A stretch of DNA of 63,754 nt, filler included, from Pelomyxa schiedti (taxonomy: Eukaryota > Protista > Evosea), in assembly GCA_020536535.1 (NCBI GenBank). It is 6 parts of 6 records of this genome, joined end to end, with 100 filler letters (N's around TTAATTAATTAA, not from the genome) between each part and the next. Parts side by side here need not be neighbours in the genome. Positions count along the whole stretch, not along the records: positions 56,846 to 60,820 come from JAHLWZ010001658.1; 5 more parts are not named here. The stretch is one strand, 5' to 3'. Below are positions 56,846 to 60,820 of the stretch, piece after piece. A program made the translations under genes and the position numbers. The notes below the pieces were generated by a model, which was not told where the DNA came from, did not search any database, and worked only from the letters and a program-made list of their open reading frames with translations. The first letter of the stretch is position 1. Each line of letters starts with the position of its first letter.

Positions 56846-57802
56846 CTCACCACTGAGCACTTTGCCAAAACTTCCTGCACCAAGATTTGCGTCTCCGTTT
56901 AATACAATGTTGAGAGGCTTTTCTAACCCTGCCGGCCACTGCTCACATTCGTACAAGTGTGCAAGGTTATCCTCATGTCCAGTTTGGGGGGCACTGCTTC
57001 CCATTGGGGTCGCTGCTCCAGCAGAGGAAGTTCCGTAAGAGATTACAAGTGGAATTGTAGCAGCTGCAATTGGTCCAAGAGCAATGAAATCGTCCGTTGT
57101 ATTGCGTGAAGATGCAGTGAGTGGAATGAAATCCTCCTCCTCCTGAGTTTGTGCGTGGTGCCTCTGGTTTTGGACTGACGTAAGTGGGTGGGGGCCACTG
57201 TATTCAGAAGACGGCGCCCGAGACCTCTTGTGGGCTGGTGGGGTTTCCGTGTGTTCATGATTCTCACCAAGGGTGCGCCCTGAAGTAGTTGTAGAAAAAA
57301 CGGCAGAAGCAGTTGTAGGAGCGGGAGTGGGAATGGTAGAATTGGTCCCAGGCGTATGTTGTTGAAGTTGCGGCTGCAGCGGTGGTTGTTGTTTTTGTCT
57401 AGCCTTCAATTTTGCCCTGCGGGATTGACTTGTACTGCCCCTTTTCCTGTGGTGGCGCCTGTAATACTCAGTGTAATTCGCATTCGTGCTGTTTGTGTGT
57501 TGGCTGTTTGTGGGAATTTAATCGTCTGGTCGGTTTGGCGAAGGAAAAAAACAAAGGGGGCCTACGCACATTTCGCTCTGCGGACATTTTTCCATCCCTC
57601 TACTCTGCACCCCTGTGAGATCTGTGATGTGGTGCGGAAGATCTTCCGGTGACGCAGATGGCTGCGGCGCCGTCACACCGTCGTCCTCTTGTTCCGTTTT
57701 CTTTGTTTGTGTTTGTGTGGCCTCACCTCCGCACGTCCCTCCTAGGCTTTTTTCCCTTGTTCTTTGCTTGCCGCCTTGTTTTAGCGCCACGTGCCAAAAC
57801 AT
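56846..57802 (-). CDS. Protein kinase, N-terminal part only (truncated at scaffold end)
   Basis: Two exons joined in frame; ends with Gly-loop NLGAGSFGKVLSGE at the gap. Confidence 0.6.
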
Positions 57803-57930
57803 TCCTATGACCCCTGCACCACTCTAATAATAGCTAAAAACAGCTAAACAAAGTTCTTTTCTTTAGTAAAAAAAACTATTGGGGTTCCCGACATCAGTGT
57901 TCTAAGGCAGACACAACTTAACATTGCAAA

Positions 57931-58790
57931 GTGAGACTGGGAAAACGACGCTCTAATTGGGGAGCAGTTCAGATTCTCAGTGTTTCCGATTATGTTTGAC
58001 TTCAAAATACCCGCGACAACTGAAAGTGCGGTTAGTAAAAGAACTCGAGAGGAAAGGAGTAAATACCTTCAAAGTGGAACAGTATAGTAATTCCAAGTGA
58101 TGATGAGACTGGGAAACGACGCTCTAATTGGGAGAGCAAAGTTCAGATTCTCAGTGGTTCCAATTGTATTCTTCAATAGAAGTCAAACCTGCAAGTGCGG
58201 TTAGTAAAACAGAGCCACAAAGATAGGAATATAAATACCTTCAAAGTGGAATAGTAATTACAAGTGATAATTGGAACAAAGAAGAAAACTACGCTCCCAG
58301 TTGGGGAGCAGTTAAGATTCTCAGTGTTTCCAATTATAGTTGACTTCAATAGAATTCGAGTATGCAACAACTGCAACTGGCGGTTAGTAAAAGAACTCGA
58401 GAGGAAAGGAGTAAATACCTTCAAAGTGGAACAGTTTTGTAATTCCAAGTGACGATGAGACTGGGAACACCAAGAAAACGACGCTCTAATTGGTGAGAGC
58501 AGTTCAGATTCTGAGTGGTTCCAATTACAATTGTATTCTTCAATTGACTTCTGCAAGTGCGGTTAGTAAAACAGAGGAAGGTATAAATACCTTCATGTTT
58601 CTTCACATGGCAAAGTGAGACTGAGAAAACGACGCTCCAGTTGACTGGGGAGCAGTACAGATTCTCACTGTTTCATCATAATTGACTTCAATTGCAGAAT
58701 TCGAGTATTGCAACAACTGCAGGTGCGGTTAGTAAACAGAACCACAAGCATACGGGAGGGATAGGAATAAATAAATACCTTCATGTTTTT
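57931..58790 (-). repeat. Five-unit ~170-bp tandem array; each unit is a GT-AG intron with TACTAAC branch point plus a 122-132-nt exon
   Basis: Introns (plus-strand coordinates) 58717-58778, 58551-58590, 58371-58418, 58189-58238, 58020-58066, all AAG|GTATTT...TACTAACCGC...YAG on the minus strand. Confidence 0.85.
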
Positions 58791-60311
58791 CTTCACATCT
58801 TTTCTCATGAAGAACAATCCAACCAAGAATGACGCCCCACAAGTGCAACTGCATGGTAGTCCGTCTTGCCGGTACGTGTGCGACAGACATTGTGTTCTTT
58901 TTATAAAAAATAAAGAAAAAGCGGGAATAAGTCATGGAAATGAATTTTTGGGAATTACGTCTTGGGAAGGCCCAGGCCCAGCACGAATCCAGCAAAAATC
59001 GTGATTGGAGAGGATGAGAGCCTGATTATGGGACGAAGCTACAACCACACTTTTTTGACGATCGTTGTGGCCTCATTTTTGGTGACTACAGAACTCGACG
59101 GACGAAGAAATGACCACGATTTGATTGTTGTCTGAGGGGTTTTTTTTCCTCAAGCACACTGTGGCCCCTTGTCAACGTTCGGCGCTCCTTTTCCCCAATG
59201 ATGCCATTAACCTTTTTGATTATGCAAAAGAACAAAACTGTGACGAGGTGATCTAAACCCTGTTCTCTTTCTAAGCGGCTATGGCTTTTCGCTCTGGATC
59301 GCTACAAAACCCATAACACTTGACTACTATTTTTTGCCCTGCACTTCGGAGGAAACCCTCTCACTCTCCTCTGATGTTGTGGTGAGGGGCTTCGCGTCCC
59401 TGTAGTTTGTATCTTTAGACTAGGATGAGGCCACGGCTCATACTCGCAGTACTACTCGCTGAATCAGCGCCACGTAGGGAAGGGCATCGCTTGCAAAGTT
59501 CCTCTGCCGCCTTCCTCCTGCTTCGATTACCACTGTGACCGCTAAATCCCCATTTGTGCCTCTGGACGGACGTGAACGGGAGCTATCTCACAGAAGGAGC
59601 CCAGGCGGAATGTGTTTCCCCTGCCTAGCAGTGCGGCTGCATGCGGTGCTGCCGAGGCTACAGACACTGACCTGGACCCGGTGGTTGCTTCCGGTATCGA
59701 CAACTTCAGGTGGAACATGGAGGCTTCGTGGAATGGGGATAGGGATTCATGGGGATGCGTATGAGAGCCAGAATTCCGATGGCAAGAACTATCGCACTGA
59801 CTATGGATGTATCTCGCAGAAAAGCTTCAAATTTGCACCGCTTGTTTGGTTCTGGCCTGTAGAAAAGCAGAGGGAGAGTCTACACAGGGCCTGTAGTTCT
59901 TTGCCTACTAGCCTTCAAAGAATCAAAGCAGTTGCCCCACCTCATTCTGATGCACCCTGTGGCGATTTTGATGTAGTTCTTGCCGCCGAAGTTGGCTGCA
60001 GCTGGCCCTTCAAGATAAACTTGTGGAAACAGTCCTCCGCCTTGGTTCAGTCTCTGGCAGAAATCATTCTGCAACTAGAGGCCGGCTTTGCAGTACTGGA
60101 TACATTTTTAGTTGATGGAAATGGGACTGTGAGTATGCAACAGTATGGGTACCCTGATTGAGATCACTGTTGCTGAGAAGAAGAGGGCGTAAGGTAACAC
60201 TGATTTATTGTGACAAGTCGACTCAGAACTGTTTTGTTTGTGCACTCAATCTCAAACCCCAACACGCCGAAAAGGCTTTGTTTTGATGAAAAAGCTTGAA
60301 AAATATTGAAG

Positions 60312-60820
60312 ATGACAGACGAGGGACCGGAGAAGACGACAACGGCATCCAGCACCAACGCGAACGTCGAAAGTAATGGAACAGGTGGAGGGGGATCGGT
60401 AGATCCTGTCGCTACGTCGGCGTCGGCGTCGCCGTCTTCTTCGGCGACAGGCGCGTCGGCTGCGGCAATTGTGAGTCCGAAGTTGTTCTTTGAGGGGACA
60501 GTTACTGATTCCATAAGAGAAGCCCGAGCTCGTGATTTCATGATTGTAGTTTTTGTTACTGGTGCGTCTTTTTTTTAGACACAAAAAAAAAAGAAAAACA
60601 TCAGTTGCCCACAATAACACTGTGCAACCAACCAATGTTTTTTACTCACACTCTTTAGACCCGAGCTATCCTGATTGCCTCAAAATGGAAACAGAGACTT
60701 TCAGTGCAGCTCATGTAGCCCCCTTTTCGAAATAGTTTTAGAAGGCTCAAGCCCAACAAGGTGTGCGATACACTGAAGGAAACCGCCATTGCTCTAAAAC
60801 TACTGTGGAACTCTGAAGAT
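60312..60820 (+). CDS. UBXN4/PUX-like protein, N-terminal thioredoxin-like region (truncated)
   Basis: LFFEGTVTDSIREARARDFMIVVFVTG, later exon KVCDTLKETAIALKLLWNSED. Confidence 0.55.

Follow-up and report, generated by a model that had tools for sequence, protein, structure and literature searches.

The genome of the anaerobic amoeba Pelomyxa schiedti contains an array of five diverged tandem units, ~172 bp each, that is best read as a series of real U2-type introns separated by non-coding exons. The array occupies positions 57918-58790, on the minus strand, of the window, a stretch of 63,754 nucleotides joined from six records of the assembly GCA_020536535.1; the piece analyzed here, positions 56846-60820, is the entire 3,975-nt contig JAHLWZ010001658.1. 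Every unit carries an AAG/GTATTTA donor (the slash marks the splice site), the branch block TTTACTAACCGC, and a YAG acceptor. This reading fits the anatomy of the units, their restriction to one strand, and the preferential conservation of the splice signals. With a little less than even confidence, we propose that an exon-intron module was duplicated by unequal crossing-over and that the resulting introns may still be functional, either in a non-coding leader of the gene that follows or in a separate upstream RNA.

The P. schiedti genome was sequenced from single-cell amplified DNA and has a size of 52.4 Mb, a GC content of 46.5%, and 148,348 introns, or 7.46 per gene, in an annotation produced with Augustus, PASA, and EVM (PMC8887013). 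The sequencing data examined here are four runs (X1-X4) of one sample, in the form of Logan contigs of up to 153 kb. All four runs are DNA, since introns and intergenic DNA are covered alike and the contigs are unspliced.

Organization of the array

A motif search of the piece located GGTATTT on the minus strand at 58779, 58591, 58419, 58239, and 58067, with an additional copy at 58011 within the last exon, and located TACTAAC on the same strand at 58734, 58568, 58389, 58206, and 58037. The remainder of the 3,975 nt contains neither motif, on either strand. In all five units the donor, a pyrimidine-rich interior, TACTAAC, and YAG follow each other in the right order and spacing on a single strand. 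The distance from the branch A to the AG is 12-13 nt, or 7 nt for the third intron if a nearer CAG is used. Like U2-type introns, the five segments (all GTATTTA...YAG) start with GT and end with AG, and 5/5 have a branch site complementary to U2 snRNA, TACTAAC, near the acceptor.

The exon-like (E) and intron-like (I) segments are all on the minus strand. The first, E0 (58779-58890), is not repeated, has ATGs at 58890 and 58854, and also opens the public gene model Pelo_18143 as its first exon. Its predicted start is hydrophobic and signal-peptide-like, with MQLHLWGVILGWIVL as a hydrophobic stretch, and the tail of E1 has the final ~20 nt of E0 (ATGTGAAGAAAAACATGAAG) as its template. A TATA-like element, TATAAAAAG, followed by GAAC, was read at 58897-58905, 8-15 nt 5' of the first ATG of E0, and is a possible promoter of an array transcript. 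I1 (58717-58778; 62 nt) reads GTATTTA...TTTACTAACCGCACCTGCAG and precedes E1 (58591-58716; 126 nt), which combines a head like that of E3 and E5 with the tail from E0 and contains four ATGs, as well as stops in the frame derived from E0. The following segments are I2 (58551-58590; 40 nt), E2 (58419-58550; 132 nt), I3 (58371-58418; 48 nt), E3 (58239-58370; 132 nt), I4 (58189-58238; 50 nt), E4 (58067-58188; 122 nt), and I5 (58020-58066; 47 nt); E2, E3, and E4 are each without an ATG. Use of the nearer CAG at 58377 as the acceptor of I3 would give an intron of 42 nt and lengthen E3 from 132 to 138 nt. The last repeat-derived segment, E5 (57918-58019), is the second exon of the public model; the repeat homology stops within it at ...CACTTTGCAATGTTAAG, and no GTATTT donor lies downstream of that point.

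Tandem Repeats Finder detected a period of 172 with 70% matches and one of 352 with 80% matches. Identity is highest between alternate units, at 94% for I3/I5, 80% for I2/I4, and 81% for E2/E4, and is 63-79% for the remaining pairs. The array is organized as a 352-bp dimeric higher-order repeat. The original prediction had described five units with these three signals, introns of 40-62 nt, exons of 126, 132, 132, and 122 nt, and a dimeric higher-order repeat, all of which agree with the motif positions on the minus strand, the segment coordinates, and the 352-bp period together with the alternate-unit identities.

Conservation and class of the putative introns

Alignment of the five units yields 219 columns, of which 76 are invariant. 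The longest invariant runs are the donor block TGAAG/GTATTTA (12 nt) and TTTACTAACCG (11 nt); the next are only 7, 6, and 6 nt. When the columns of the five units were shuffled, a run of 12 was obtained in 2 of 20,000 shuffles and both runs in 0/20,000. With units U1, U2, and U3 only, the first run was obtained in 129/20,000 shuffles, and both runs again in 0/20,000. The unit types differ by 20-37% overall, mainly by indels in the pyrimidine-rich intron interiors and in the exon linkers, and the 23 signal positions are unchanged between them. The donor and branch signals are thus preferentially conserved, with a contribution from recent duplication or gene conversion. That the signals are the best-conserved part of the repeat is what selection on splicing predicts.

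A U12-type (minor) class for these introns was rejected, as the donor GTATTTA and the branch sequence TTACTAAC do not fit RTATCCTT and TCCTTRAC. Members of the related lineages Mastigamoeba and Entamoeba are without a minor spliceosome (PMC8136499). The share of introns with one common branch hexamer is below 22% in intron-rich eukaryotes and 6% in Entamoeba histolytica (PMC2483917). Given the intron density of P. schiedti and the degenerate branch sites of intron-rich species, five perfect copies of TACTAAC are unusual. Yeast-type TACTAAC introns (PMC2483917) resemble those of the array in that a heptamer perfectly complementary to U2 lies a short and fixed distance from the acceptor; however, the invariant branch site of the yeast type is a genome-wide property of intron-poor species, whereas here it belongs to one repeat family.

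Coding potential of the exons

The array exons are non-coding as they stand. The spliced frame from ATG 58890 encounters a TGA nine codons into E1. The longest spliced frame covers E2 and E3 and ends in E4, at its second codon. A peptide-like block (IIGNTENLNCSP, with variants) recurs in frame 2, 1, 0, 0, and 2 in E1 to E5, respectively, and the phase inherited from E0 meets 3-4 stops in every internal exon. Translation of the spliced frames therefore bears out the original prediction, which claimed no shared frame, a TGA in exon 1, and a stop at codon 2 of exon 4. Assembly errors do not account for the frame breaks: no indels separate the Illumina contigs of X1 from the window sequence. Among the exon combinations, only E0 joined to E5 remains open, with 94 codons to a TAG at 57844-57846 when E5 is read through.

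Homology searches agree with this result. An open reading frame (ORF) of the array and the E0/E5 peptide had no relatives among 5.8 billion proteins, and the array exons had no match in Pfam. Searches with the array ORF, the E0/E5 peptide, the downstream ORF, and the neighboring gene recovered only the contig's own two annotated proteins and no paralog, and exact look-ups of two ORFs of the window returned no record. The exons do not show the common length class, phase, and open frame of a coding tandem or mutually exclusive exon cluster, nor did the encoded repeat match a protein homolog or domain model.

The region from I2 through I5 (58020-58590, minus strand; ~570 nt) contains no ATG on the sense strand and four on the opposite strand. 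Shuffling predicts 7.2 ATGs in its 484-nt ATG-free core; the probability of finding none is 6e-4 if the units are independent and 0.06 for a single unit. This ATG-free stretch could hint at avoidance of upstream AUGs in a leader whose start lies within the array; alternatively, the copies may simply have inherited it.

Copy number and haplotypes

In X2-X4, the contigs over the array have a summed depth no more than ~2x that of the flanks, and in X1 the depth is below that of the flanks, which indicates that the unit is not a high-copy dispersed repeat. Inverted repeats, as sought for a dispersed repeat or introner, were not found at the ends of the units or of the introns. A metagenome scan with the pattern GGTATTTA-N(12-42)-TTTACTAACCGC gave 31 single matches, approximately the number expected by chance, and none was BLASTN-similar to the piece.

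A second haplotype, present in the single-cell runs X2-X4, diverges from the window by ~3%, with 18 differences counted over 640 nt at 56846-57485. A 437-nt contig of this haplotype carries pieces at least 90% alike to E3, E5, the E0/E1 tail, I1/I4, and E4, in a different order, which reveals that the array is structurally polymorphic. None of the 12 listed haplotype differences in the array touches a signal block, a result that does not reach significance by itself (P ~0.13). Runs X2-X4 also contain "opposite strands" joints at 60200-60295 that are typical of amplification chimeras.

The downstream gene and the public gene models

The array ends 115 nt from ATG 57802, on the same strand. This ATG is preceded by an in-frame TAG 24 nt 5' and begins a probable first coding exon (57570-57802, minus strand), in the same frame as a long ORF. 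The frame from ATG 57802 contains one stop (TAA, 57520-57518) in 319 codons. A candidate 66-nt intron, GTGCGT...ACAG (57504-57569, minus strand), which is suggested by the frame and has no CTAAC-type branch site, would remove this stop and leave 297 open codons to the contig end. Since ATG 57802 is in frame with the long ORF and a single removable stop intervenes, it is most likely the start of the downstream gene, as had been predicted. The long coding exon (56846-57503, minus strand) encodes a Ser/Thr/Pro-rich region, the hydrophobic sequence FIALGPIAAATIPLVISYG, and then LGAGSFGKV, and is cut by the contig end. Its earlier designation as a kinase has in its favor this glycine-loop motif at the contig edge, but nothing further; Pfam gave no match to the downstream ORF, the domain being cut by the contig end. 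The sole "kinase-like" match to this ORF, P0003, was rejected as a spurious, unrelated repeat protein. In a profile-free search of 1.84 billion representatives with this ORF, the one real match was KAH3723152.1, "hypothetical protein Pelo_18143", which is encoded on the same contig.

The hydrophobic stretch FIALGPIAAATIPLVISYG (57049-57105, minus strand) is 19 residues long and lies between the Ser/Thr/Pro-rich region, which has NxS/T sites, and the glycine loop. It may be a membrane anchor, and the ORF from ATG 57802 has no signal peptide. A receptor kinase that requires E0 as its signal peptide was considered and dropped, as ATG 57802 is in the frame of the long ORF with a single removable stop. 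AAAGAAC strings are found at 58894-58905 and 57850-57860 (minus strand), shortly 5' of ATG 58890 and ATG 57802, respectively. The Entamoeba core promoter comprises a TATA element, GTATTTAAA, and a GAAC element, to which the AAAGAAC strings may be likened.

The public annotation places E0, E5, and the downstream ORF in one gene. Mapped to the DNA, the 162-aa Pelo_18143 (56847-58890, minus strand) begins with E0 (58890-58779), from which a 759-nt intron (58778-58020) spanning the entire array leads to E5 (58019-57918); a 743-nt intron then separates E5 from a portion of the long ORF, and a last intron of 51 nt follows, with a stop at the contig edge. E0 and E5 contribute 71 residues, and the model leaves E5 at 57918. 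The downstream part is not credible because the final 51-nt intron puts LGAGSFGKV out of frame, and Pelo_18143 looks like a mis-fusion of the array with the downstream gene. On the plus strand, Pelo_18144 (121 aa; 59733-60161) is modeled with a 63-nt "intron" (59849-59911; GTTCTG...CTACTAG), and its ORF is open without this splicing as well. Pelo_18144 had no homologs and no Pfam match, and the gene or its intron may not be real. The array appears to have forced the gene finder into the 759-nt intron, and both models look unreliable. An unannotated ORF is located further along the plus strand, at 60312-60820. It starts at ATG 60312 (MTDEGPEKTTTASS...), is Ser/Ala/Gly-rich, and reaches a GTGAGT at 60471. 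The second haplotype has in-frame indels in the GAC/GCC-rich stretch at 60379-60415. A gene probably runs off the contig end here, where a 9.8-kb X2 contig extends past the piece.

Discussion

Several observations weigh against functional introns or against their place in a leader. The block at 58028-58115 is 97% identical over 88 nt to that at 58380-58467, and I2 and I4 do not differ at all over their final 26 nt (100% identity). Because of these near-identical blocks between alternate units, the five units amount to approximately three lineages, and recent duplication or gene conversion accounts for part of the invariance of the signals. Exon blocks of 6-7 nt are also invariant; thus, constraint is not confined to the splice signals. 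The GTATTT donor is without the usual G at +5, and two other candidate introns in the piece start with GTGCGT and GTGAGT, although the perfect TACTAAC may compensate for a weak donor. The public model, which was trained on this species, skips every internal splice site. A leader RNA would carry nine ATGs in E0 and E1, which predicts strong inhibition of translation of the downstream ORF. Finally, the joints that removal of the five introns would create are absent from the contigs of X1-X4, which are DNA only and uninformative on RNA. The claim of the original prediction that selection maintains splicing is supported insofar as the signals are the most conserved block, but it is weakened insofar as part of their invariance stems from recent duplication or conversion.

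The main alternative, less probable than the proposed reading, is that the internal units are inert duplicates within one long intron or within a dead orphan gene. E0, one intron, and E5 would be the original gene, any productive splice would run from 58779 to 58019, and the internal units would be skipped or give nonsense isoforms, with their signals retained through youth or gene conversion and serving no function. Such an origin is consistent with E0 and E5 being the only combination that stays open, with the 97-100% identical blocks, with a unit order that differs between haplotypes as in an unstable minisatellite, and with an E0/E5 peptide that is an orphan. However, the 23 signal positions are intact despite 20-37% divergence and indels, whereas conversion would homogenize whole tracts, and internal sites that compete with the E0-E5 splice should decay if that splice is under selection. 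If splicing proceeds by intron definition, skipping of the whole 759 nt would be unlikely given the perfect signals of the short introns, and the public model that contains this skip is poor downstream, with the GxGxFGKV loop out of frame. It is improbable that the array is instead an untranscribed or unspliced promoter-proximal minisatellite, in which GTATTTA would be a TATA-like DNA element, TTACTAACCGC would contain a factor site, and the likeness to introns would be coincidental. The array does lie directly 5' of ATG 57802, and GAAC-containing strings are near both candidate starts; yet AG/GT, a pyrimidine-rich interior, TACTAAC, and a YAG 7-13 nt further on, five times on one strand, are hard to obtain by chance. 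Moreover, TACTAAC is found nowhere in the ~3.1 kb outside the array on either strand, and the ~100 nt between GTATTTA and the GAAC-like string within the units is unfit for a core promoter.

Two further alternatives concern the product of the array, and we consider each very improbable. An array of protein-coding repeat exons, for instance of a secreted protein or of the extracellular part of a receptor-like kinase, masked by frameshifts or by mutually exclusive exons, would explain why three of the four internal exon lengths (126, 132, 132) are divisible by three, why one frame is open throughout E2 and E3, why a peptide-like block with NxS/T and Cys recurs across units, and why E0 starts with a hydrophobic, signal-peptide-like sequence. 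The frames largely refute it: the common block takes three different phases when counted from the exon starts, and the phase dictated by E0 has 3-4 stops per internal exon, in a sequence that the X1 Illumina contigs reproduce without indels and that thus contains no assembly error. There are also no homologs and no Pfam match, and the downstream ORF has its own in-frame ATG. The chance is similarly slight that the array is a source of functional small RNAs, of circular RNAs (circRNAs), or of RNA cleaved by the first splicing step only, as in fission-yeast telomerase RNA. The exons could form a hairpin around GCTCC...GGAGC in which 2 of 17 pairs show a compensatory change, and full-length intron circles are reported in E. 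histolytica (PMC6085484, PMC8876499). Nonetheless, Rfam gave chance matches only at E-values of up to 10, and with the weak consensus fold there is no match to a described structured RNA family. Fold z-scores are alike on both strands (-2.9 and -2.7), as for any repeat, the covariation term of the consensus fold is unfavorable (+0.92), exon lengths vary by indels, and the introns are too short for small nucleolar RNAs (snoRNAs). With a short branch-to-AG distance (~12 nt) and an intact AG, the second splicing step should proceed. The spliceosome-processed small RNAs or circRNAs that the original prediction had listed among its options are therefore unsupported, the Rfam search being empty, the fold weak and not strand-specific, and the branch-to-AG distance short.

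The array can be compared with several known systems. Like tandem exon duplications of the Dscam type, it consists of head-to-tail copies of exon plus intron that point to unequal recombination and have kept apparently usable splice sites; unlike Dscam-type clusters, which keep length, phase, and open frame, its copies differ in phase and the internal ones carry stops. In GAS5/UHG-type host genes and in 5'-untranslated-region introns, splice signals are conserved while exons drift and no ORF is present, and the host genes are maintained for the snoRNAs in their introns. The array is likewise without an ORF and has drifting exons, but its 40-62-nt introns match no RNA family, and the repeated, polymorphic structure is its own feature. 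Introners are dispersed in many genes, often with terminal repeats or target-site duplications. The array resembles introner-like elements in having several near-identical introns with their own strong splice signals, but it is tandem, low-copy by depth, and without inverted terminal repeats. In fission yeast, formation of the telomerase RNA 3' end requires an Sm site upstream and a second splicing step that is blocked by the long distance from branch to acceptor. Both cases feature a strong branch site in a non-coding RNA, putative for the array, whereas the array has a distance of ~12 nt, an intact YAG, and no conserved Sm-like site. On sequence grounds, snoRNA host genes, spliced-leader RNA (SL-RNA) arrays, and TER1-like cleavage were rejected as models. 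A parallel in mechanism is intron gain or duplication by tandem genomic duplication, the Rogers model (with examples in PMC4974935 and PMC2891723), where a segmental duplication likewise increases the number of splice signals in a transcription unit. In the Rogers model, a duplicated AGGT within an exon gives rise to a new intron, whereas in the array an existing intron and its flanks were copied four more times, creating new exons too.

The duplication junction is recorded in E1. Its last 19 nt (CATGTGAAGAAACATGAAG) copy the end of E0 (GATGTGAAGAAAAACATGAAG), and its body up to CACTTTGCCATGTGAAG copies E5 up to CACTTTGCAATGTTAAG. As E1 is a chimera of the E0 tail and the E5 head, the first event was presumably an unequal exchange between ATGTGAAG in E0 and ATGTTAAG in E5. 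This exchange would have duplicated an exon end, an intron, and an exon start, in a module composed of the last ~12-20 nt of E0, the short U2-type intron, and the first ~100 nt of E5. The tail is shortened in E2 to E4 (TTCCACTTTGAAG), and units with this tail would have been duplicated later, as a dimer. Repeated unequal crossing-over would thus have produced five intron copies with four chimeric exons between them and, later, the 352-bp dimer.

Transcription would start from a promoter just upstream of E0, at the TATA-like element, and each 40-62-nt intron would be recognized and removed singly by intron definition, aided by a TACTAAC 12 nt from the acceptor. Given such small introns with complete signals, single removal is the expected outcome and would leave a mature RNA that contains E1 to E4 and encodes no protein. 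This non-coding product would be either a long 5' leader of the gene at 57802, laden with upstream ORFs (uORFs), or a separate upstream transcript that is non-coding or a decayed orphan, and purifying selection would act on the splice signals and not on the exon sequence. Position and strand favor the leader: the array is on the strand of the downstream gene, ends close to its start, and is joined to its ORF in the public model. A separate transcript is nearly as likely. A more specific and rather doubtful possibility is that the array serves as a constitutively spliced, copy-number-polymorphic non-coding leader, in which minimal introns with yeast-strength signals in a weak-signal genome tune the kinase-like gene through the number of splicing events (or of junction complexes, uORFs, or triggers of nonsense-mediated decay), and that unequal crossing-over supplies heritable variation in this number.

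Tandem duplication of an exon-intron module is a known type of event; the non-coding outcome and the strong signals are what is unusual here. If the proposed reading is correct, the array would be a natural example of introns that were multiplied by tandem duplication and kept functional while the new exons drift. It would bear on how introns are gained in intron-dense genomes and on whether the strength of splice signals is set locally or genome-wide. It would also represent a rare case, in a protist, of selection on the splicing of a non-coding leader built from repeats.

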